Shown one piece after another: positions 9,036 through 38,512 of a DNA stretch of 64,000 nt (its first letter is position 1; each line of letters starts with the position of its first letter). The DNA comes from Podarcis bocagei. Taxonomy: Eukaryota. A program made the translations under genes and the position numbers. The notes beneath the pieces were generated by a model. It did not search any database, was not told the DNA's origin, and saw only the letters and a list, made by a program, of their open reading frames with translations. Where the stretch lies: NCBI GenBank assembly GCA_964188305.1, contig OZ076886.1; one strand, given 5' to 3'.

Positions 9036-12000
9036 TTAGGAGATTTTACAGCTATTTCTGGTGCAGTGTTTCGGAGGGCTCTGGAGTGGACGGATAATTT
9101 TGGCTTTCTTCAGACTATTTCTTTTGTTGTTGTTGCTGGCAGTGAGAGAGTAGGAACGTCCGTGCATCATCCGAGCATTAAGTCCATTGGCCATAGAAAA
9201 CGATTTGAGATGGCTTCTTAAGGCAACAGGGAGTGGAAGTTTGTCCACAAGGTGCACTGGGGTGCATGAAACTATGGCGCGGCAACAAAGATCTTGCAAA
9301 CTCAGGACTTAAAACAAGAAACAAAAACATGAATTAAGATTAGTCATAATATGATTCTAAATAGCCACAAGGTGACACGAGTGCACAGCTTTGACTTCAC
9401 TGTATTTTTCAGAGCTCTCGGGTTCTGTTTCTTTTCACTGCTCCTGAAGTTCCTTCCTAATTCTACCTTGAATCCCCATAACTATGGCTTGCCTCCATGA
9501 ATAAAGGTGATGTTGCAACGATTTAACAAGGGGAAAATGGGGAAGAAGAAAATACAAAAAATTCTAACAACACACAACCCTCCCCCTGAAAAGAAAAACA
9601 GCCAAATAAATAAATAGATAAATTAAATTAAATTAAATTGAATTGAAGCAATACTACAACCTCCAGCTCTAGATGGCAGCATAATTCCAGGGGCCCACTG
9701 AAGTAAATTTTAGGTAAACGGTGCTTGAACATCCACTTTAGTCACCTCCTTTTCTCTAACAACCCATGTATAGCTTGCAGGTACTTATTCAAATTATTTA
9801 GGGGTAGAAATTCTCCTTCCTTCCACCTTAGAGAAGAAGAGCTATCAATTTATAAGCCTTTCCAACATATCCATCACACCTGAGGTAATATGAAGCACCG
9901 GTTTCCTTTGTGCATCTGATGAAGTGAAAGATTTTGCCGTGATAAATTTGTTCAAGACTCTGTTGTTTTTGCTGCAAGAGACTAGCATGACTCACTCTCT
10001 GGAAATTGTAAATATTAACCATGTCCAGTACTAGTACAGATGTAATGCTAAGCATGGTTAAAGCAGACAAGGGAAGCGAGTGGGGAGGAAGGGTGCTCCC
10101 AAGTTTGGCGCTCAATTGTCATACTGTTTACAGCAGGGTGGCTAATCTACAACCTGCATACTGCTCAACACCATTAGTTTTTTAACATAGCTCCCCAGCA
10201 CGGCCAATGTAAATTTATGCTGCATGTGTGCACACACAGAGCACTCTCTCACACACACATACACCACACTCACCACATCTGCAAGCACACAGCATTCTCT
10301 CACGCAAACACATACACAGCACTCTCTCACTCTCTCTTTGAGTGGGGCAAAAGTCTTCCTATTCCTTTTCAATTCTCTCTGCCTGTTCTTTAAAGATTAG
10401 CTCCTCATCTTGTGCTCAGCGTCACAACACTGATATGAGGAGATAAAAGCTTTATGGGGCTAGTGGACCACTTCCTGTGGCTTGCTGGCCCAGAGCTGGC
10501 TCATGAGTTAGACGCCCCGCTGCAATAAAGCAAATGATTTTGTGTTACTTACCTTTGTTTGGCCTCCACAGCCGGTCCATTCCATGTCTCATTAACACAA
10601 TCCTTGCAAGTTCCGTAAAGGACTCTGTGATGTTGAAATTACAGAGTGGGCTTACTTCAAAGAATGTCATGCCTAATCTTTCAGCATAGGCCTGTGCCTG
10701 CTCAGTAGATACTTGTCGTTTGAAGGCCAGATGCAGGCGGTTGCCAACAAGGATTTTGGGTACACCAGGAGCATGCTAAGTAAAGATAGACAGCAAAATG
10801 TTAGCTTAGAAGTCTCTCACCCTCTTCTTCAACAAAATACTGATTATTAACAACAACAGTAACAACAAACTCTTTAATTCCCTTTGTCCATAGTGCTGTG
10901 CTATAGGTGGATTCCATCAAGAAAACCCAATACAAGAAAATATAATAACCAAACAGAATCAGCAGGTGGTAAAAAAATGTACTGCTTTGCCAAATATAAG
11001 TTGCAGAATTTTTATTTTTTTTAAAAAACAACCCTTCAACATAGAATTATGGGTATGTAAAAGTTTCAAGAATAAACTTTCTGGTCGATCATATCAAATG
11101 TGTCTGATAGAGTTACCACAACCAACTGAAGATGAAAATCATTCACCAAGGCAACTACAGCAGTCCCAGTTTGAAAACCAAGCCAGAAGTCAAACTGCTA
11201 TTGATCAAGGTAGAATAAGCACCAGGAATGCTTGGAATCATCTGACAGGCCACCTGCTGCATGTTATAAGAGGAAGATCAGGAACTGGACAAGAGTTGGT
11301 GTCATCCAAGTCCAAATATAGTGTTTGAGAAAGGGAATGACTTTAAGGCAAACAGGATATAAGCAATTTTATCTGCAAAATGTCTCACATGTCACAGCAA
11401 GCTGTCAATTACTTCCCTCAATAGTCAAGACATGCAGTTAGGTATCCATTTGCCACCCACAGCAACTCTAAGGTGACACAGTCTTTTGATGGCAGAAAAG
11501 AAAGCTCCCTGCTACTGCAAACTCTTTCAAATGGGTTTTAGGCCACCTTCAAGTGGATTTGTCATGAGTTTTCAGCCACCCACATTCTAGCCATCTCATT
11601 CAGTCATCATGTAGTTCAATCATTTTCTTAGGCATTATATGAAACATTCAGAGATGTGTCTTACCTCATCTATTTCCTTTATCCATCGATCAATGCCATC
11701 AAATGACCAGCGATTTGTAATATCATATACCAATATCACGCCCTGAGTGAATAAAGAAGATTAGATCAGCCTGACACATATATAAGGTACACAGTACATC
11801 ACACAATTTTGTGTAACCATTCCTTTATTTAACCAGGAAAAAGAGGAGCAGACTGAGGACTTAACAAATCTGAACATTTCTCTAAAATAATTTATTTCTG
11901 GTGACTCAAAGGATGCTCCCTTTATTCAGCAGCAACAAATTGTATAACAATTCTTGAAAGCAAGTAGTACAATAAGTAAGTATAGTTCCCCCACCCCTTA

Positions 12001-15000
12001 TTGTAGCTCTTTTCTTTTTAGTTAATTCTTTACAGTGACATATTTTAGATGGCAGAATTGTGATTACCTGGGCCCCTCTGGAATAGGAACGAAATATGGT
12101 GCAGAATCTGCCTTGCCCAGATGTGTCCCTGTGGAGGTAAAATACAGTTAAAAATACATAGACCTTTCCATTCTGAATAACAGTGTTCTTGTTGAATTCT
12201 TATCTGGTCTTTCTGTTTTGCTCTCTTTATTAGTATTCTACCCTTTGCCTTAGTGGGGAAAGCAGTCCAGGTTAGGTATGTTAGGTATGTGAGGCTGAAA
12301 GACAGAGACTGGTCCAAGATCACCCAGTGAGCTTCATGGGTAACTGGGAATTTGAACCCTAGTCTTCCAGGTCTGAGTCCAGTACTTTAACCACTAAACC
12401 ACATGGACATCATGCATTTCAGCAGGATCATTCACTGAATCTACATGGGTGATTATGTACTCCTATAATATATTCACCAATCATTTAATATTACTTAGGC
12501 TTCTTGCACATATACAGAGAAACCCATTAATTTCACAATTGCTCCCTTGTCCTCAACTATAGCTCTTTAGTACAAAAGGCTAGTGGGTAGTATGACCTCT
12601 TCTTAACTGTTATAAGAATTAAATATTTGTAGTCAACTTTACAGTAAATATAAATACAAGCAGTATTACGTCCACTATGAACTGTTTTCAAAGCACAACG
12701 GCACAATCCAAACAGAGAACATAATACAAAGTTACCAGAGCTGCAGCTTTATTCGACGGCCATCCAGGAGTATTGTTGTCGTCTTGTAATCAATACCTAG
12801 GGATGGGAGGAGGTAAGGCAGAATTTTAAAATACTAAAAGCATGCCTATTTTTTTCACTCTAGAAAGCGACCAAGCGAGAAATGCCTATGTTAAATCACT
12901 TTAATAGTACCAACCGATTTTTGTTTTTTTAAAAAGTCCAATATATAGGGAAGGGCCAGTGGAAAAGCACCCACTTTGCATGCAGAAGCTGCTAGGGACA
13001 GCCATGCCCCCACCCCACCCCATTTTTTAAATGGGCACCAGATTTTTAGGGCAATGGGTGGTGAGTAGTATAGCATGTGTACTTTATTATTACTAAGATT
13101 ATCCACGAGGGCTTTAGTCAGACTGCTTTTGCAGTGTTCGTTGTACAGGCTTCAAACTATATGTGAAAAAACTTTTCAGAGGAGACAGAGAGAAATATTA
13201 CATGTTATGCACTGCACTTGATTATTTCTAGGGCTTATTAGAATTGTCCAAAATGTTGCATACTTCAGCTGCCTATTGGCTTGTGCCAATGACATCTCTG
13301 GATTAAGCAGTCGACTCCTACTTCCAATCATTAAAGCAGTTTTGCAATTGTAGATGAGGAATGCATATGTAGTTCTTTTAATAACAACAACAAAATAGAA
13401 CCAGGCTACCCACCAGTACCCTAGCTACACAATATGCTGCTGTTTCAGTATCGCCTTATTTCTTCTTCTTATTTCTTGGGTTTTTTTAATCTTTATTTTA
13501 GGAAACAACTTTTCTTCTTCTTCCCTGTAGCATTTTTTCCCCTCTCTCTCCCCCGATTCTGAACAAGATGACTACTCATTTTTATTCTGTCTGCATGCTT
13601 ATTTAGCGACTGAGTCAGAATTTCAGACCTAGGGCTTCTATAGCAGTAGAGTGGCCCTTTTTTTCCTCCTGTAAAGGTCAGGGGACAGAGAGGGATTATT
13701 AAGGGCTCATATGAGACACTTAAGTAAACTCTTGGGGCGGGCTGGGGTAATAATTGCATATTTAAAACTCATAGATTTTGATACACAGTCACTCAAAATG
13801 TAACCTTTTAATTTATCTGCTTGTTAAAATGTTTATAATTTATAGTACTTTGACTATCACATTTTTAAAACTACCTGTCCAGTGCTGAAGGACAAAATCT
13901 GGTTTCATGAATTCATGAAGACCCCAGAGACTACATAAAAGTATCTTCAGATTTGTATATTTTTTGCCACTGTAAATCATTAAAATCAATAAAATGCAAA
14001 AGCCAAGCCTTCCATTTTTCTTCTTACATTGTAATAGCTTATATAATTTTCTTTCCATATCACATTCTGATATTTATGCGTGATAAATGGCTTTGTACTT
14101 GGTTTCTCCTATTCTCACATTGTATAAATGTATCTCTCTTCAAACAGGCACAAATCCTCTGCAAAAAGTATCTAAGGTCCTGGGTAGATACTCTTTAAAA
14201 AAAGAGAAAATGTTGTTTGCTCATTTACATTTAACCTTGCTCCAAACAGGCTGCATTTAATTAAGTCTCTTAGTATGGATTAACAGTGCCTACGCAAGGG
14301 GCTAATCTGCATTAATTTATCTACATTAAATTAACACGTTGCATAAAACTACCATGTTTTCTGTTGGACACGGAGAGCTACAGGGCTTGGGTAGGAAGGA
14401 AGAAGATAGTGGCTGTCTTCAAGGCAGACAAATAGTTCCATATTCACATTTTTTCATTTTGGCAGGAGTAGCATTTAGGGAGGAAACTAAAGAGCACTGC
14501 AGCATCTTTTTCCAATACTAAGTAATCATTGTAGCCCTCCCCTAGTTGAAATTTTGGCATTGTTTCAGCCTCTGTTTAAGAAGCTAATCAAGTAATATCT
14601 GATTTTATTTCAATATCCATGGTAACAGATCCTCCATCCCTTGTTTTATAACAATCTAATAGTTTTACAGGTATCAGGCAAACATGCAGGTTATTAACTG
14701 AAATTATTTGGCTTACACTTAAGCATCAAAAACCAACTGTGTGGAAACATATCAGTTAATATCATTAAAAGTCAAGAAATTAAATGTAATTGTTTTGGCA
14801 AGTTTATTTTACTCTGCCAAGCGTCCAACCACAATCTGATTATTTTCAGGAACCATGGAGGGCAGTTCTTAATTCTGATAACCTGTTTCTACTACAGTTA
14901 TGTATGTCTATCAGATTTAAAGTGTATAATTACACAACCATTAAGCTTGTAGCATGCAAAGTTAAAAAAGAACAACATTTATTTCTGGCATCATACCCCG

Positions 15001-21000: not shown

Positions 21001-23817
21001 TCCTGCTGCTACTGAAGTCAGTGACAAGTCTGCCATTCGATGGTGCAGCCATCGTCAAAAATGAACTCATTAAATTTTTGATGTGGAATCATATTCTGAG
21101 GAAGTTTTTATTTTGCTTTGGATCAAATCAAATTAAAGAGATGCATAGGTTCAGATTTTCAGCTGCATCTGACATGGTCTGAGCCTCTCATTTGTCAGGT
21201 TCAATGAAGGAATGAACTATAAATAAATGTTCCAGTGTTAATGCCAAAAATACTCATCCTATCCATATCAGTTCTTCAGAAACACTTGGTAGTGCTATTA
21301 TAATCTTGTGCTATACTTATTCTTGTCTTTTCCTTTTTAAAAAAACATAATTCAGACCCTTATCCACCTTTATTACTTTTAGGCGGATGTCCAGATGTCT
21401 TGCACTGTTCTAAATATTTTGCATATCAGCAGGCTAAAAAGATTCATCATCTTGATTAAAATACATGTGAATTCTTCACTCTCTGTTTATTAGGGTAATA
21501 CCATTCGGAGCCTATGCTTAACCTCCTGTGAGAGCCAGCTCTACTATTAGGCAGAGACAGCTGCCTTAGACAGCTATGGGGTGTCATGAAAGGGTAGTAA
21601 ATCAAAAGTTATTTAATTTGCTGTATTTTTACTGCTGAGAAGGGGAGAGACACTTGTGTGATTTTCTGCCTCATGTGCAAAATAGATTGACTACCTCTGA
21701 GTACTAGACACCTTGTCTTGGCAGTGGGTGAGTTGGAAGCATTTGCTCTTCCACCTCAGACAGAAAAATGGGCCAGCCAGTCACCATGTTTGCAGCAAGA
21801 AGATATACAGCCATACTTTATGTTACATCCGCTTCATGTTACGTCCTGCGGTGACCCGGAAGTACCGGAAAGGGTTACTTCCGGGTTTCGCCGCTTGCGC
21901 AGAAACACAAAATGACGTCATGCGCAGAAGCGGCAAATCGCAACCTGCGCGTGCACAGACACGCCGCTGCGGGTTGCGCTCTTTTCATGTTGTGAATGGG
22001 CCTCTGGAACAGATCCTGTTCGCAACCAGAGGTACCACTGTATGCTACATTGGGGTAATGTACATTGTTTTCCTTGGTCCTTACTCTAGAAACAAGCTCC
22101 TGATGGAAGAAATGATCACATGACCATTTCCCTGTCAGGTGCTGATAAAGTAATGCATGTTTCTCAGTGTCTACCACGGAAACCATGTGAGCTACCAGTG
22201 GAGGTAGAGATAGCATTCCAGATGCTGAGAAAGGAAGGTGCATAGCTGTACATGCATGGGGGCAGTGTGAGAATGAATGAATGAGTGCGTTGGTGGATGT
22301 AAGGTAGAGTTTAAAAGGGAGGTCCACCGCGGATGTGTGTGAATGAGGTATCCCCAGCCACTTTTGGCTTCAGACCTATCCACTCAGAGGCGGAGCTAGC
22401 TGTTCCGGCACCCGGAGCGGCACACATGCGTCCCAGGGGGGTGCAGCCACGGTGAGCATCCCAGGGGGGTGGAATGGCGATGCCACCTCCCACGCCAATG
22501 ACACCTAGGGTGAATCGCACCCACTGCACCCCTCTTCCTCCAACAGTGTATCTACTGCCAGTAAGCAGGCAGCCTGAGACTACTGTTCCCTGAGGAAATG
22601 TGGTCCTCACCTTTTTAAAAAAGGTTTCCCAATTTGCTGCATATGGTCATATAGTTTATACTTTTAAAACAGCAGACAGCTACCTGCAAGAACTAAAAAA
22701 AGTGATTAATTTTTAAAAAAATGAAAATCTCCACCAATACTCAGCATTCCCGATGGTCACTCTAAGAAAACTGAAAGATGCACAAGACCTGTATAGCAAA
22801 CCTTTCCAGTCTCTATTTAACAAGAGGTATTCTTTGTAACTTCTCAAAGCAGTTGTACAGCACAAGCTTGCTGGCCTGGCACAGAACACAAACCCCAAAT
22901 ACAAACTTACACTGTTCCTCTTCTTCAACGATATATGCACAGCAAAATGTTAATCTCCTCCACTTAGTGTGCATCCTTTAATTTGGTGTGAATGTGAGCA
23001 TCACTGTCATGATTTCAAGTGGAGGCAGCAGTTCATTTTAGCACTAGGATTAAATGACTTTAAGAGGCCCAAATAAAATTGTTTGGCTGTATCCTTGTAT
23101 GTGCTTTGGTTCTTTTTGGGTTGTGGTCTCCTCTGCCTGTAGCTCTGCTGAGTCTACAGAACACTCAGTTTCACCAAGCTAGTCTGACCATGGCCATTAC
23201 ATCTACATGACAACATAAACTTTACTGACTCACGAGGAAATTTTACAGTGCATTTGTGCTCACACCTTGTAATTCAGTTGACAGGAATGGGCAACCTTTT
23301 AACGTTAAGGGAGGTGTGTGAAACCTGATTATTTGCAATAACCTAAAGGTGGATTGTGGGAAGCATAATCAAAGCAGATGACGACAACACGTCAGCCAGT
23401 AGCCGATGGGCTTTCCTGCCACTGCACAGTTTCTAAAGAAGGCTACCAGAGAGCTCAAGGCAGCTGGGAAGGCAGATGCCCTGTCATGGAAGCCCTGCCC
23501 TATAACTGCCAAGGTGTGGGAGGTGTCTGTGGTGACTCAGTAATCGCGAAAGGCAGCCCTGCACAAACACTACCTTCCTCCGTGCAGTCTACAGGTGTAA
23601 GAAAGAGCTACCTGCCGCCAAGTAACCGAGGCTGGCCTAGATCTTGGCCGCAGGTACAACCCCGTTGCTGCTTACCCATATTGTACCCGTAAGGCGACTC
23701 AGTGGCTCCATCCTCCAGGCTGGCTAGTATCTCTCCTTTGCCCACGTCGCTGTCGCCCACCAGCAGGAATTTCAGCAAGAAGTCATAAGCTTTCACAGGG
23801 CTGCCCACGTGGTTCAT
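9036..23817 (-). CDS. RAB40B: Ras-related protein Rab-40B (SOCS-box Rab GTPase), 6 coding exons, 278 aa
   Basis: Exons 23817-23676, 12796-12736, 12128-12068, 11742-11665, 10775-10553, 9307-9036 (142+61+61+78+223+272=837 nt), all GT-AG. Contains P-loop [21 protein letters not shown] box ([13 protein letters not shown]...[11 protein letters not shown]) and C-terminal CKIS prenylation motif. Confidence 0.97.
12290..12403 (-). mobile_element. tRNA-derived MIR/Squam-like SINE fragment
   Basis: Minus strand begins gtggtttagtggttaaagtactggactcagac...gggttcaaattccc, with Pol III A/B-box-like elements. Confidence 0.6.
16018..16193. mobile_element. Palindromic MITE
   Basis: Imperfect inverted arms cagtatacacactatac...agcacattc...aagaattctg / cagaattctt...gaatgtgcttt...gtatagtgtggacactg. 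Confidence 0.6.
16700..17340 (+). mobile_element. Ancient L2-like LINE remnant in RAB40B intron 1
   Basis: Degenerate RT segment ([11 protein letters not shown]...I.S.GL, YHCY.ND resembling YHCYADD). Confidence 0.55.
18745..18824 (+). mobile_element. CR1 3' terminus
   Basis: ggactagatgacc...cccttccaactcc...attctctgattctatgat tail. Confidence 0.8.
21808..22040. mobile_element. Tigger-like MITE family B
   Basis: TA-flanked, ends cagccatact...gaggtaccactg; internal CCGGAAGT and TGACGTCA. Confidence 0.85.
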
Positions 23818-25216: not shown

Positions 25217-25645
25217 AATACCCTGTTATTGTGCACATGCTGTACAGTACATACATAATTACATGGATAACACAGGTAGCAACCTGCTTCCAAGATGCTT
25301 AAATCTAAAACAGAAAGTAAGGAAACTGAGGACTGAGAGAGAGAAATGTGTGGGCAAATGTTGCATGTACTTAAAACTGGGTTGCAGTTGGGAATGTATA
25401 TTAAAAGGATAAATCAAAGGCCACATGGAAGATAAGATCTAAGAAAGATTAGAAGGAATGGACAACTGGCATATGTATTCACCCTATGTTGTGGGGGCAG
25501 CAAGGAAGAATGGGCATGTAATTGAAAGAAGCATGAGACCTTTGGCTGGATGAGATTGTTGGAGTTGGAGAAGCAGAGGTTATAGGTGGAGATTTAAGGA
25601 AAAGCCAGGGTCAAGAGCTTGGTGTGGTCAAAGTAGATTTTCAAG

Positions 25646-25960
25646 TTAAGAACAGGGCATCTCCTCCTGTTGACTCTCTTTTGGGAACCCTGGCATCTCC
25701 TCATCTTGGTTATCTTTTGGGGACCCTGCCATCTCCTCCTGTTGACTCTCTTTCGGGAACACTGGCATCTCTTCTTGTTGGCTCTCTCTCCTGGACCCTG
25801 GACCCTCTGCCTGTTGGCTCTCTCTCCGGGACCCGGGACCCTCTGCCTGTTGGCTCTCTCTCCGGGACCCGGGACCCTCTGCCTGTTGGCTCTCTCTCCA
25901 GGACCCGGGACCCTCTGCCTGCTGGCTCTCTCTCCGGGACCCGGGACCCTCTGGTTGTTG
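25646..25960 (-). repeat. Coding minisatellite, 36-bp unit (QQAEGPGSRRES x5, then QQEEMPxFPKES-type x3.7)
   Basis: Directly visible 36-nt periodicity running up to the stop codon. Confidence 0.95.
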
Positions 25961-28327
25961 CCCACCTGTTTGCAACTCTGTATCTTGGGGCTCTTGGGCC
26001 TCTGGTTGGGGAGGCTGCTGTACTTCTGCTTCCTCACCCCCAGCAGGGGCTGGTTCTTGTTTTTCTTCCTCCTCTACCTTAGCTTCACCCTGGATTTCAT
26101 CACTCTCTGGGGGCTGATCCTCTTTAGCCTTTGGTTGATCACCTAGTGGAAGAGGAGCTTCGCCATATCGAGGGCCATATATTTTTGTTAGGTAGTCTAT
26201 GAACAAACTCTCGCTGGTCTGTTGACTTGCAGATCTGACTTCTACACCAGTTTTTCTCTCCAGGTAGAATGTTTCCTCTTCAGGAAGTTTCTGATGGTCC
26301 TCTGGCTGCTCTTGCTCCTTTTCAAGTTGTGCTGGCTTGTTCTCATCTGGCTGTTGTGGCTGTTGGCTGCCTCTCCGAGATTCCTGTCCAGTTAGCTGTT
26401 GGCTTCCATGTTGAGATCCTTGAGCATCTGGTTGCTGGCTTTCATCCATCAATTCCTGCCCTTCTGGTTGTTGACTCTCCTGCTGTGACTTCTTGCCTTC
26501 TACCTGTTGACTACCACGTCTGGATCCCTGTCCTTCTGCCTGTTGATTACTATGCCAGGATTCATCCTGGTTTTTGAGAGAGGTTCTACTGCTGGGTAAA
26601 GAGTCAGGAGGAAAGTCTGTCTGTTCATTTTTATGCACCAGTTCTTTATGTCTAAAAACGCTTATTTTGCTATCAGTCTGCAGTGTTTTGTCTACAGACA
26701 TTTTATTAGAAGCTTTTCTCTTTCCTTCCACCTGTGATTCCTTTCCTTCCACCTCTTGGTCACCTTGCTGGGATTCCTGAACCTCTGCCACTTCTACTGG
26801 TTTAGCTACTGGTTTAGCTTCTGAATCTTTGGGAGCAGCAATCACTTCTTCGGCAGTTTTCACTTTTTCTCCAGCATCACTATCGGCATCTGGTTGGCGA
26901 GAAAGACGAAGAACTTCTGCCAGAGGCTTTCGCTCCCAGATTTGACTTGTCTGCTGACCTGTGCATTTCAATAACTTCCCTGTTTTTTTGCTGATCCAAG
27001 ACCCATCCTCTGTCGGTTGCTGCTGCTTTGACTCTTGGCTGCTGACACGAGCTACTGCAGGTGGTTTTCCTGCTGCTTTCTCTACACTTTTCGGGTAACC
27101 AAGAGGTTGCAGAATTTCAGAGAGTGGCTTGGGCTCCCAAATTCTACTGGTCTGCTGGCTTTCGCATTTCATAACTTTTCCTGTCCTTTGGCTAATCCAT
27201 GTCATGTCCTCCTTGGCTTCAACTTCATTTATAGGTTGTGTTGTGGAAGGTCTATGGCTTTGTAGGACCTGGTGGTTAATGGATTGATGACTGCCTCGGC
27301 GAGATTCATGTCCTGGGACCTGCTGATTGTGTCGGGATTCCTGGCCTACAACTGGTTGAGTGCTTCGGCGGGATTCATGTCCTGGAAGCTGTTGGCTATG
27401 CCGGGATTCCTGGCCCGTGAGCTGTTGACTTCCGCGGTGGGATTCATGCCCTGGGAGCTTCTGGCTATGCCGGGATTCCTGGCCCGTGAGCTGTTGACTT
27501 CCGCGGTGGGATTCATGTCCTGGAAGCTGTTGGCTATGCCGGGATTCCTGGCCCGTGAGCTGTTGACTTCCGCGGTGGGATTCATGCCCTGGGAGCTTCT
27601 GGCTATGCCGGGATTCCTGGCCCGTGAGCTGTTGACTTCCGCGGTGGGATTCATGTCCTGGAAGCTGTTGGCTATGCCGGGATTCCTGGCCCGTGAGCTG
27701 TTGACTTCCGCGGTGGGATTCATGCCCTGGGAGCTTGTGGCTATGCCGGGATTCCTGGCCCGTGAGCTGTTGACTTCCGCGGTGGGATTCATGCCCTGGG
27801 AGCTTCTGGCTATGCTGGGATTCCTGGCCTATTAAAGGTTGACTCTGACTGCCTCGGCGGGATTCATGGCCCGGGAGGTGCTGGCTATGCTGGCTGCCAC
27901 GATGGGAGTCATGACCAAGTTCCTTTTTGAGAGATGACATGCTAGCACTTGCGCTGCCAGGAGGCAAGTCAGGCTGCTGGTTTTCCTCTATCAGTTCCTT
28001 ATGCTGAATAATGCTGATTTTGCTTTCAGGTCGCTCTACCTCACCTTTATCAGAACTTGTTGTCTTTGGGACATCTTGGTCCATTGCTAGGCCATTATCT
28101 CCACTTTCCTGGTGTGGTGTCAACTCTTCGATTTCATCATTATGTTTCTCCTCCTCACTATCTTTGATTTCATCACTTTGTTTCTTTTCCTCATTGATTT
28201 CATGTGCATCTTCTTCATTAATTTCAACAATTTCCTCCTTGATTCCATCATTATCTCCCTGTTCTTCAGTATCTAGCCGACCTTCATTTGCGGCACTGCT
28301 CTCAAGAGTTTCCTCAGGCTCATCCAT
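25646..28327 (-). CDS. Uncharacterised intronless 893-aa E/Q/S-rich tandem-repeat protein (FSCB-like features)
   Basis: 2682-nt uninterrupted ORF in DNA where chance ORFs outside CpG islands stay near or below 150 aa. Start context AGAATGG (A-3, G+4) with an in-frame TAG just upstream; frame-preserving 69-bp and 36-bp repeats; downstream AATAAA at 25211-25216. No transposon protein motifs. Confidence 0.85.
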   Translation of the reverse strand: MDEPEETLESSAANEGRLDTEEQGDNDGIKEEIVEINEEDAHEINEEKKQSDEIKDSEEEKHNDEIEELTPHQESGDNGLAMDQDVPKTTSSDKGEVERPESKISIIQHKELIEENQQPDLPPGSASASMSSLKKELGHDSHRGSQHSQHLPGHESRRGSQSQPLIGQESQHSQKLPGHESHRGSQQLTGQESRHSHKLPGHESHRGSQQLTGQESRHSQQLPGHESHRGSQQLTGQESRHSQKLPGHESHRGSQQLTGQESRHSQQLPGHESHRGSQQLTGQESRHSQKLPGHESHRGSQQLTGQESRHSQQLPGHESRRSTQPVVGQESRHNQQVPGHESRRGSHQSINHQVLQSHRPSTTQPINEVEAKEDMTWISQRTGKVMKCESQQTSRIWEPKPLSEILQPLGYPKSVEKAAGKPPAVARVSSQESKQQQPTEDGSWISKKTGKLLKCTGQQTSQIWERKPLAEVLRLSRQPDADSDAGEKVKTAEEVIAAPKDSEAKPVAKPVEVAEVQESQQGDQEVEGKESQVEGKRKASNKMSVDKTLQTDSKISVFRHKELVHKNEQTDFPPDSLPSSRTSLKNQDESWHSNQQAEGQGSRRGSQQVEGKKSQQESQQPEGQELMDESQQPDAQGSQHGSQQLTGQESRRGSQQPQQPDENKPAQLEKEQEQPEDHQKLPEEETFYLERKTGVEVRSASQQTSESLFIDYLTKIYGPRYGEAPLPLGDQPKAKEDQPPESDEIQGEAKVEEEEKQEPAPAGGEEAEVQQPPQPEAQEPQDTELQTGGQQPEGPGSRRESQQAEGPGSWRESQQAEGPGSRRESQQAEGPGSRRESQQAEGPGSRRESQQEEMPVFPKESQQEEMAGSPKDNQDEEMPGFPKESQQEEMPCS
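27290..27915 (-). repeat. Coding minisatellite, 69-bp unit (LPGHESHRGSQQLTGQESRHSQ[K/Q])
   Basis: Six near-identical units at 27389-27802 plus degenerate flanking units; units alternate between K and Q types. Confidence 0.95.
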
Positions 28328-36300: not shown

Positions 36301-38512
36301 CTCACTCACCTCACAGAGTGTTTGTTGTGGGGGAGGAAGGGAAAGGAGAATGTGAGCCGCTTTGAGACTCCTAAAGGGGAGTGAAAGGCGGGATATCAAA
36401 TCCAAACTCTTCTTCTTCTTCTTCTTCTTCTTGTAGCTGAAAACTGAAAACAGAGAAACTTAGTAAGAGCTATGTGTTTTAAAGGTTTTTAAGATTTGGG
36501 GGAGCAACCTTTATGGTACTCATGCTAGTAGCAGCTGAGACCTGCGGGTATAGGGTGGTATATAAATTAAATAATAATAATAATAAGAATAGGTTTTTAA
36601 ATGATAGCATAATAAAGTTTCCTATTTTTAGAAAGTTACTCTGTTCAGAACAGACAGTCACCACTTCTCTCTGTTTTAATAGGTAAAGGTGAAGAACAAA
36701 CTGGGGTCCAGTTTGTGGATAAATTCGGGTTCCACACTGTTACATGTTGTGGCTATCTTCCACAGGTATGATCTGGACTAATGGCTCTTCCACACTGAGG
36801 AAACCATTTAGTTTTTTGTTCACTTCTAGTTTTCCTTTAATTGGGAAAGGCTGAATATGTTTGAATAGGAGGACTTTTAAATATTAATTCAGAGAACTGT
36901 AACTAGGTATGAAGATTCCAGGGCTACTGTCATAACTTTTGGTATTAGTAACCAATCTTCACCTTTCAGCTAACACAACAGTAGATGTTGGTGTTTACAG
37001 CTGCACCAGTGAATGCCCCTGAAAACAACTGCTGTGCCTTATGCAGCGTCAAGAGTTTGTGTTAGCAGTAGCTAATAGCTAATTAACACAGCAAGAGTCT
37101 TCTTTTTATATATAAGTGTATAATTTCATATTTTTGTAAAGTGTGTAAAAGTCTGAAAGTCTCATCCACAAACCATTTAAATCTATTTCAGCACCAGAGA
37201 AGTAAATAGGTCTAGATGAGCCTCCATACAAATGGTATGGCATAATTGGTTTATGAATTGCTTGTCTTATTTCCATTTTTCATCGGAGGGCCTTTTTCAA
37301 GGCATCTTCTCATAGAGACAAACTGGCTGAATTTTTGACTACTTGCTTGTTTAGGTGAATGACTGGCAACAGGATTGGGTGACTTTCTTTGCCAGGCAAC
37401 GAATTCAACCTCAGATGGACATGATTGAGAAGAACTCTGGAGACAGGGAAGCAAGAGAACTTTGGGCAAAACTCCAGGTAACGATGTCCCATGGGGACCA
37501 TAGAGGGAATTGTTACATTCGTATATGTGGGGTTGTTCTTATTGTGTAGAGTTTCTGAAATACCTACACTCTCTGTGCAAATGTCATGATCCTCTTCTCC
37601 CCAGAACCTAATAAACTAGTGGAAAAGAGTCCTCTCACCCACATCTCTCTGAGGTCTCTACTAATTGTGGAAGAGCAATACCATAGCAGCATAAAAGAGC
37701 CCTCACGTGAAAAAGACCAAATAATATTTGAAAGGAGAGGAGGAGCTATTTGAATACACAATAGTACTTTTTAAAAACAATTAAAGACTAAAATAAGCAT
37801 TCTGTTCCTTGAAATAAACACTGATATGTGGCTATATAATGTGTGAAGGAATGTCTGAGAATTTTTAAAAATTTAAATACAAAAGGCTTAAAAATCTTCG
37901 TTAAGCCTTTTGATAAAGTAGTACCTCAGATATCTGGTTTAAATGCTAACAAGACTCTGGAAAATCTTGTTACTTAATTTTTGGATGTGATGTGCCCCCT
38001 ACTGTTCATGTTACTTTAATTCGAATCGTATGCACCTAGGTTGTCCACACCCTAGGTTTGTCTCTTTTTCTCTATACAGTATCAGGATTTGATGTGTCTA
38101 CTGTTTAAAGCCACAAATTAGAACACCCAGTCCCCTTACAATTAACTTTAGCAACTCCTGCTTTCTTTTTCAGCTGAAGATGCCCAGTTTGTTTGGCGAT
38201 ATGGAAATAGTTCCTGCTCTTCTACATGGGGATCTGTGGGGAGGAAATGTAGCTGAAGATGACTCTGGGCCAGTTATCTTTGACCCTGCAGCTTTCTATG
38301 GTCACTCTGAGTATGAGTTAGCAATTGCTGGGATGTTTGGTGGCTTCAGTGGTTCATTTTATTCTGCCTACCACAGCAAAATCCCCAAAGCTCCAGGGTT
38401 TGATAAACGGCTCAAGCTGTACCAGTTATTTCACTATATGAACCATTGGAATCATTTTGGCGGAGGGTACAGAGGTTCATCTATCAATATAATGAGGAAT
38501 TTGGTCAAGTGA
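32769..38512 (+). CDS. FN3KRP: Ketosamine-3-kinase (fructosamine-3-kinase-related protein), 6 exons, 309 aa
   Basis: Exons 32769-32909, 34022-34173, 35808-35899, 36683-36765, 37355-37477, 38174-38512 (930 nt), all GT-AG. P-loop GHSGGGCIS, catalytic HGDLWGGN; the C-terminus [14 protein letters not shown] resembles FN3KRP more than FN3K. Confidence 0.95.
33392..33528. mobile_element. Palindromic hAT MITE family C in FN3KRP intron 1
   Basis: 137-bp hairpin element nearly identical to 62796-62932; TSD gtct(t)aaca. Confidence 0.9.
34851..34942. mobile_element. Short hAT-like MITE
   Basis: TIRs CATAGCTGTCAAC / GTTGACAACTATG; 8-bp TSD gatgggag / gattggag. Confidence 0.8.
36250..36432 (+). mobile_element. 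5'-truncated squamate SINE with (TTC)n tail
   Basis: gctgggtgaccttgggccagtcac...gagccgctttgagactcct...caaatccaaactc followed by a TTC microsatellite. Confidence 0.7.

Follow-up and report, generated by a model that had tools for sequence, protein, structure and literature searches.

Mouse Fscb has a single coding exon, is expressed in the testis and encodes a protein that is targeted by protein kinase A (PKA), and its knock-out is fertile; the gene has been described as conserved among mammals (PMC7401351). Clients of the dynein light chain LC8 (DYNLL1/2), such as ASCIZ/ATMIN, Chica/FAM83D and RSP3, are disordered chains with several copies of a TQT-type motif of eight residues. Positions -1 and +1 of this motif hold its two fully buried side chains, and weak motifs can bind LC8 if they are multivalent (PMC6607443). 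Of the 79 validated binders that Jespersen et al. 2019 list in Table S4, 62 have T at position -1, 7 have I, 6 have V and 4 have S; Q, L, N and E do not occur there, and the sole LQT peptide, IQKMLQTD from PLK1, is a non-binder (PMC6607443). Here, we analyze a stretch of 64,000 nucleotides from the lizard Podarcis bocagei (contig OZ076886.1 of assembly GCA_964188305.1), hereafter the window. Its minus strand contains an open reading frame (ORF) whose product shares some traits with both FSCB and LC8 clients and carries three copies of a repeat that we call the W-TGK-QQT module.

The ORF is uninterrupted from ATG to stop. Its product is rich in E (14%), Q (14%) and S (12%), with a mean hydropathy of -1.5, and a Pfam search with the 893 residues matched no family. 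The ORF and the three modules are located as follows:

25646..28327, minus strand: ORF of 893 aa, encoding the lizard representative of a family of disordered proteins that is restricted to sauropsids and includes some proteins named 'FSCB' in databases
27101..27253, minus strand: module 1 (aa 359-409), core from W377 to W397 at 27199-27137, QQT at aa 391-393, independent E-value 9.4e-23
26900..27052, minus strand: module 2 (aa 426-476), core from W444 to W464 at 26998-26936, QQT at aa 458-460, independent E-value 2.3e-16
26168..26320, minus strand: module 3 (aa 670-720), of a divergent flavour (FYLERKTGVEVRSASQQTSESLFIDYLTKIYG), core at 26269-26201, independent E-value 1.9e-6

Module 1 reads WISQRTGKVMKCESQQTSRIWEPKPLSEIL, with W377 at 27199, and module 2 reads WISKKTGKLLKCTGQQTSQIWERKPLAEVL, with W444 at 26998. 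The core of module 3, FYLERKTGVEVRSASQQTSESLF at 26269-26201, is conserved in Zootoca and Pogona. The E-values come from a leave-out hidden Markov model (HMM): it was trained on 35 instances of the module in distant homologues, and neither the window nor P0001-P0003, the three orthologues closest to it, contributed. Among the 1337 six-frame pieces of the window, this HMM matched the three modules and nothing else. By sequence comparison, the three segments are shown to be copies of an undescribed, lineage-restricted repeat of about 35-50 residues.

A previous reading of the same DNA, made from its letters only (the sequence-only reading), had noticed three copies of a module that it did not recognize. 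Minus-strand translation reproduced the copies at the same positions, the leave-out HMM found the same three, and our searches likewise retrieved neither a Pfam family nor a PDB sequence nor any significant fold. The same reading had listed three further QT motifs, DKTLQTD, HKNEQTD and DTELQTG, all of which were located in the ORF. Its description of the three segments as the main hydrophobic islands of the protein stands for the most part: of the ten highest Kyte-Doolittle peaks, four fall within or beside a module and a fifth corresponds to DKTLQTD. Furthermore, modules 1 and 2 contain four of the six Trp and two of the three Cys of the ORF. The further QT motifs are distributed as follows:

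26615..26692, minus strand: paired QTD motif DKTLQTD-SKISVFRHKELV-HKNEQTD (aa 546-571), with DKTLQTD at 26692-26672 and HKNEQTD at 26635-26615
25964..25984, minus strand: DTELQTG (aa 782-788), common to Zootoca, the closest relative, only

The paired arrangement is seen in sequences from Zootoca, Rhineura, Pogona, Gekko, Chelydra and Podarcis. In homologues, it takes the form [VI]D-x-x-[LQ]QTDS ... x-x-QTD, and the family pattern is [VI]D-x-x-[LQ]QTD-S-x-x-S-[VI]-F-x-x-K-E-L-x-x-x-x-Q-T-D. DTELQTG is probably a chance QT that is not constrained. Besides the intact pair (aa 544-575), a decayed copy, ESKISIIQHKELIEENQQPDLPPGS, lies towards the N-terminus (aa ~100-125, positions 27950-28030, minus strand); its QT residues are kept in Pogona and lost in the window and in Rhineura. 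This decayed copy suggests that a unit comprising the QTD pair, the SRRGSQ repeats and the modules was duplicated within the gene long ago.

The consensus of the module is [ED][DE]x[TS]-W-[IVL]-[NS]-x-[KR]-T-G-K-x-[LMV]-x-[SCN]-x-[ST]-Q-Q-T-[SD]-x-x-W, or W-x3-[RK]-T-G-K-x7-Q-Q-T-[SD]-x2-W in its short form. The conserved unit W...TGK...QQT...W is about 21-25 residues long with fixed spacing, the distance from TG to QQT being identical in every instance listed. Over 165 instances from 41 proteins, conservation reaches 89% for W, 90% for T, 93% for G, 98% for Q and 99% for the following T, and the flanking columns reach an information content of only 1-2 bits. Among 52 aligned instances, G and the last T are invariant. 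The module cores of the window, Rhineura and Pogona proteins are 90-100% identical, for whole-protein identities to the window protein of 53% (Rhineura) and 41% (Pogona). The sequence-only reading had supposed that the copies are under constraint, which agrees with QT being the best-conserved part of the module. It had also named an outcome that would speak against it, namely QT residues conserved no better than their flanks. Since QT stands clearly above the flanks, this is not what was found.

The N-terminal type of the module, ED-x-T-W-I-S-x-[KR]-T-G-K-x-M-K-C-x-S-Q-Q-T-S-x-I-W-E-x-K-P-L-x-E-I-L, includes modules 1 and 2. The C-terminal type, A-Q-Q-T-Y-S-x-[IV]-S-L-E-D-G-x-W-[LI]-N-R-[KR]-T-G-K-x-L-x-S-x-S-Q-Q-T, has a QQT on either flank, and module 3 is a third, lizard-specific variant. 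In several paralogues (P0024, P0034, P0020, P0031-P0033 and P0037), TQT or NQT replaces QQT as the anchor triplet. For instance, P0024 of Anolis carolinensis (LOC134295546) has four copies of KCSTTQTS and one of KSSTTQTN, and TQT is likewise present in P0034 and P0020.

A word search with residues 365-760 of the ORF retrieved 12 proteins. The closest one, P0001 of Zootoca vivipara, is named 'fibrous sheath CABYR-binding protein' and is 79% identical over residues 365-760 and 75% overall. It is followed by the 'filaggrin-like' protein of Rhineura and the 'MED12-like' protein of Pogona, and remoter relatives come from Gekko, Chelydra, Podarcis and the bird Limosa, the last one also being named 'FSCB'. 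By homology, the window gene is the lacertid orthologue of the Zootoca 'FSCB' gene, in a single exon. The search with a module profile that the sequence-only reading had proposed was made exhaustively over 1.84 billion cluster representatives and gave 35 proteins at E ≤ 1e-3. Over all searches, the members that a source names are sauropsid only: squamates (Anolis, Sphaerodactylus, Phrynocephalus, Varanus, Pogona, Crotalus and Podarcis), turtles (Chelydra, Pelodiscus and Chelonia) and birds (Limosa, Calidris and Grus). No mammal, amphibian or fish member was found among these representatives at that threshold. A word search from the N-terminal region of a turtle protein, at E ≤ 10, likewise returned sauropsids only and no mammalian FSCB. 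According to these searches, the W-TGK-QQT repeat defines a small family of mostly disordered proteins confined to squamates, turtles and birds.

The 41 homologues have 2-8 copies each. Full-length members have 4-8, usually 5-6; the window protein has three and some homologues have two. Outside the modules, these proteins are of low complexity, disordered and rich in Q, E and S, with long repeat-rich linkers full of RRxS. Their database names are inconsistent (P0001, P0002, P0003, P0019 and P0012): FSCB, filaggrin-like, MED12-like, futsch-like and hypothetical. Such names apparently follow composition and not homology.

From the alignment of 52 instances, AlphaFold2 (AF2) predicts module 1 as a beta-hairpin with strands TWI and VMK, a turn at SQRTGK and a short helix at SEIL. 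The predicted local distance difference test (pLDDT) score is about 88 in the hairpin block, for a mean of 70.8. The long C-terminal-type module is predicted as a three-stranded meander (YSIVS, SWIN and VM; mean pLDDT 66.7). Neither family nor fold databases offered a relative. Pfam searches with seven homologues and 52 modules gave nothing consistent, TPR_25, IRK_N and others staying below cut-offs, and a module profile run against PDB sequences gave two irrelevant matches at E > 1. With the model of module 1, Foldseek retrieved from the PDB only generic hairpins, none of them significant. VIA-align over 48,161 chains stayed at Z ≤ 2.6, and its list was not headed by any WW domain. A match to DUF3783 (E 5e-13), seen for Anolis P0024 only, was treated as chance: a single short and weak match had been counted four times across repeats that are nearly identical. 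Since no fold or family match is significant, the module, as modelled, is best described as an undescribed hairpin-type mini-repeat and not as a WW domain.

The explanation that we favor, with a probability of roughly 0.6, is that the conserved W-TGK-QQT repeat, a predicted hairpin, serves for docking or assembly within a disordered scaffold. The strand containing W and the strand after TGK would pair, with [KR]-T-G-K forming the turn of a beta-hairpin; this pairing is predicted with modest confidence. In the longer variant found elsewhere in the family (QQTYSxxSLEDGxW...), a third strand would be added, and the invariant QQT would lie at a fixed distance, just beyond the second strand. Each module may be a small ordered unit for docking or assembly, whose exposed QQT segment would contact a putative partner, most simply via beta-strand addition. 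With several modules per chain, the interaction would be multivalent, and PKA-type kinases could regulate it by phosphorylating the RRxS linkers. It is from the conserved hairpin repeat that we infer the steps to a docking unit and, beyond it, to the sperm tail. Several observations weigh against this explanation. Confidence in the AF2 models is only moderate (mean pLDDT 71 and 67), QQT lies just past the last strand and outside any confident element, and the hairpin is possibly over-called because the multiple sequence alignments consist of paralogous repeats. Furthermore, QQT is kept in contexts of three kinds, following the hairpin, preceding the YSxxSL strand and inside the QTD pair, which suits a pure linear motif as well as a fold element. 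As for expression, the RNA status of the four runs that we used (X1-X4) is a guess, and a bona fide RNA run from a related species gave two reads only.

The main alternative is a multivalent LC8 client, in which QQT, LQT and EQT would be weak, non-canonical anchors that jointly bring in stacked LC8 dimers, in the manner of ASCIZ/ATMIN or the flagellar protein RSP3. We compared the positions of the motifs by eye with the binders and non-binders tabulated by Jespersen et al. 2019 (Table S4; PMC6607443). Much of the motif fits: all six motifs of the window have QT, and family-wide these two residues, at positions 0 and +1, are the best kept. The flanks agree as well, with a hydrogen-bonding residue at -4 (S, C, N, D or H), often K, T or A at -3, a small or polar residue at -2 (S, T, G or N) and S or D at +2. 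VDKTLQTD differs from the canonical xDKxTQTD at -1 only, each chain has 5-12 sites, and the TQT anchors of Anolis P0024, of P0034 and of P0020 are true ones. However, position -1 in the window is Q three times, L twice and E once, none of which occurs there in a validated binder, whereas clients have T, V, I or S. Across the 165 instances, it is Q in 72%, T in 11%, N in 8% and L in 6%; therefore, selection keeps Q and not the LC8 optimum. Moreover, the constrained unit of 21-25 residues is far longer than the LC8 8-mer. Its QT is held at a fixed spacing from an upstream W-x3-[KR]-T-G-K element, predicted as a hairpin, and often from a downstream W. An LC8 motif also calls for a disordered, extendable stretch with five or more residues N-terminal to the anchor and no proline ahead of it. 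The six motifs have no such proline and the protein is largely disordered, but residues around -5 and further upstream (about -5 to -9) are predicted to form strand 2 of the hairpin. LC8 binding is conceivable but not supported by this comparison, and we consider it unlikely. Somewhat more doubtful still is a broader proposal, in which QQT would be the anchor of a new class of multivalent beta-strand-addition motifs. In the germ cells or flagella of sauropsids, a light chain of the LC8 family, or else another hub, would read a QQT strand presented by the hairpin, and the family would be a PKA-regulated scaffold, specific to reptiles and birds, that stacks this hub and functionally replaces mammalian FSCB.

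Other explanations deal with the fold or with chance. The modules could be blades or strands that join, within or between chains, into a larger beta structure (small propeller or sandwich, or cross-linked fibre) with the linkers looped out. The 5-6 modules usual in full-length members, the two or three antiparallel strands predicted for each of them and the conserved Cys of the N-terminal type (K-C-x-S-Q-Q-T), which could form disulfide cross-links, would suit such an assembly. Nevertheless, it is improbable given disordered linkers of 60-250 residues and very variable length, and given that the window protein has three modules only and some homologues two. A degenerate, diverged three-stranded WW fold that binds proline-rich ligands was also considered. 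The top Foldseek rows for the three-strand model are WW domains from the PDB (Fbp28, NEDD4, YAP, Pin1 and others; template modelling score by target ~0.55). In addition, the module and the WW domain share the form of a tiny antiparallel beta meander, with a Trp, an N-x-x-T-G-like turn (W-[IL]-N-x-x-T-G in the module, Y-Y-x-N-x-x-T in WW domains) and a second Trp 20 residues further, and modules 1 and 2 have W-E-x-K-P. However, these rows have E-values of 2-5 and probabilities ≤ 0.35, the VIA-align result given above shows no WW domain at the top, and the Pfam WW model matches none of the 52 modules at E ≤ 10; the signature of the WW profile is two Trp, a Y-Y-x-N core and a C-terminal Pro. Neither the profile search of PDB sequences, which yielded no WW domain, nor hhalign against a WW profile (probability < 1%, in a rough check) reveals sequence similarity, and the Trp lies in the middle strand of the model, not at the location of the first Trp of WW domains. 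The WW explanation is hence very improbable. Finally, the motif might be a functionless recurrence in a Q-rich low-complexity protein. Bare QT is indeed at a near-chance level in the ORF (six observed for 4.5 expected from composition shuffles), and DTELQTG is not conserved beyond Zootoca. Nonetheless, [QL]QT[SD] is enriched (four observed for 0.14 expected, with none of 2000 composition shuffles reaching four), and chance is refuted by leave-out HMM E-values down to 1e-22 and by the conservation of QT over the 165 sauropsid instances, which leaves it a negligible probability.

The module is a concrete handle on an uncharacterized and inconsistently labelled protein family, of which it is the only ordered and strongly conserved element; it is not in Pfam. 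If the QQT strand is a true docking site, it would represent a new recognition motif in a lineage-specific scaffold, for LC8 with a relaxed position -1 or for another partner. In practice, the value of the result is modest; it concerns annotation and offers a hypothesis that can be tested with peptides.

Two tandem arrays lie in the coding sequence:

27288..27829, minus strand: 7.9 copies of a 69-bp (23-aa) unit found by Tandem Repeats Finder, encoding HESxRGSQQLTGQESRHSQxLPG and carrying RRxS/HRxS sites
25656..25960, minus strand: 36-bp (12-aa) repeats encoding ESQQAEGPGSRR, with the ORF stop inside or just past the array

The units of both arrays contain RRxS/RKxS, a consensus of basophilic, PKA-type kinases. 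The RR.S pattern occurs eight times in the ORF for 0.29 expected, and repeats of the ESRRGSQ type are present in all homologues too.

The window gene resembles mammalian FSCB in having a single coding exon, a long, acidic, repeat-rich and disordered product, and many PKA-type sites, the eight RRxS among them; two databases have given the FSCB name to its relatives. By contrast, homology to mammalian FSCB was not detected: no mammalian protein came from the module profile or from either word search, including the one at E ≤ 10, and no direct pairwise comparison was made. Since only sauropsids were recovered, the 'FSCB' label derives from database names alone. The neighborhood of human FSCB at 14q21 presumably does not include RAB40 or FN3K, unlike that of the window gene. 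A role in the sperm tail is hinted at only by the database name and by the FSCB-like gene architecture. If the family is unrelated to mammalian FSCB, the database name needs correction.

Towards its 3' end (25300-25960, minus strand), the ORF lacks about 300 C-terminal residues, with two further modules, that are found in Zootoca, Rhineura and Pogona, and its stop (25646) falls among the ESQQ-EEMPG repeats of the 36-bp array. These 300 residues of the orthologues were absent anywhere in the 64-kb window (tblastn, including a search at E ≤ 10 with word size 2). The evidence from sequencing reads is mixed. In the best-matching run, one contig crosses the stop and the junction with zero differences, and the depth is 69 in the ORF body for 30 in the 3' flank (about twofold). 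In three runs, contigs of the repeat extend beyond 25656, and in a related species the 3' flank is joined at 25658 to at least 1.1 kb of unlike sequence. Therefore, a deletion allele or a second, longer copy appears likely at this end.

In a run of only 82 million letters, whose RNA status is guessed, a 1.4-kb contig of the ORF reached a depth of 18. This contig is probably a transcript because such a depth is too high for whole-genome data in a run of that size.

The ORF is flanked by RAB40 on one side and by an FN3K-type gene on the other, for which the following exons were recognized:

23690-23800 (~23.8 kb), minus strand: RAB40-type exon 1, within a CpG island, ~1.85 kb downstream of the ORF stop
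12107-12127 (12.1 kb), minus strand: RAB40 exon with DTSGQGRF
10728-10745, minus strand: later RAB40 exon
9285-9302 (9.3 kb), minus strand: RAB40 SOCS-box exon
38225-38248 (38.2 kb), plus strand: FN3K-family exon with HGDLWGGN

For Rhineura, Grus and Chelydra, no neighboring genes were called at the locus, and neither a RAB40 nor an FN3K motif was found within 10 kb of it. The Rhineura protein is encoded at full length in a single reading frame of its own locus.

Several paralogues occur per squamate genome and some of them are adjacent, such as P0020 and P0045 of Phrynocephalus (JRQ81_001291/001292); in Podarcis lilfordi, P0010 and P0023 are both on one 137-Mb record. The number of squamate paralogues and the adjacency of some of them therefore suggest a lineage-specific expansion by tandem duplication.

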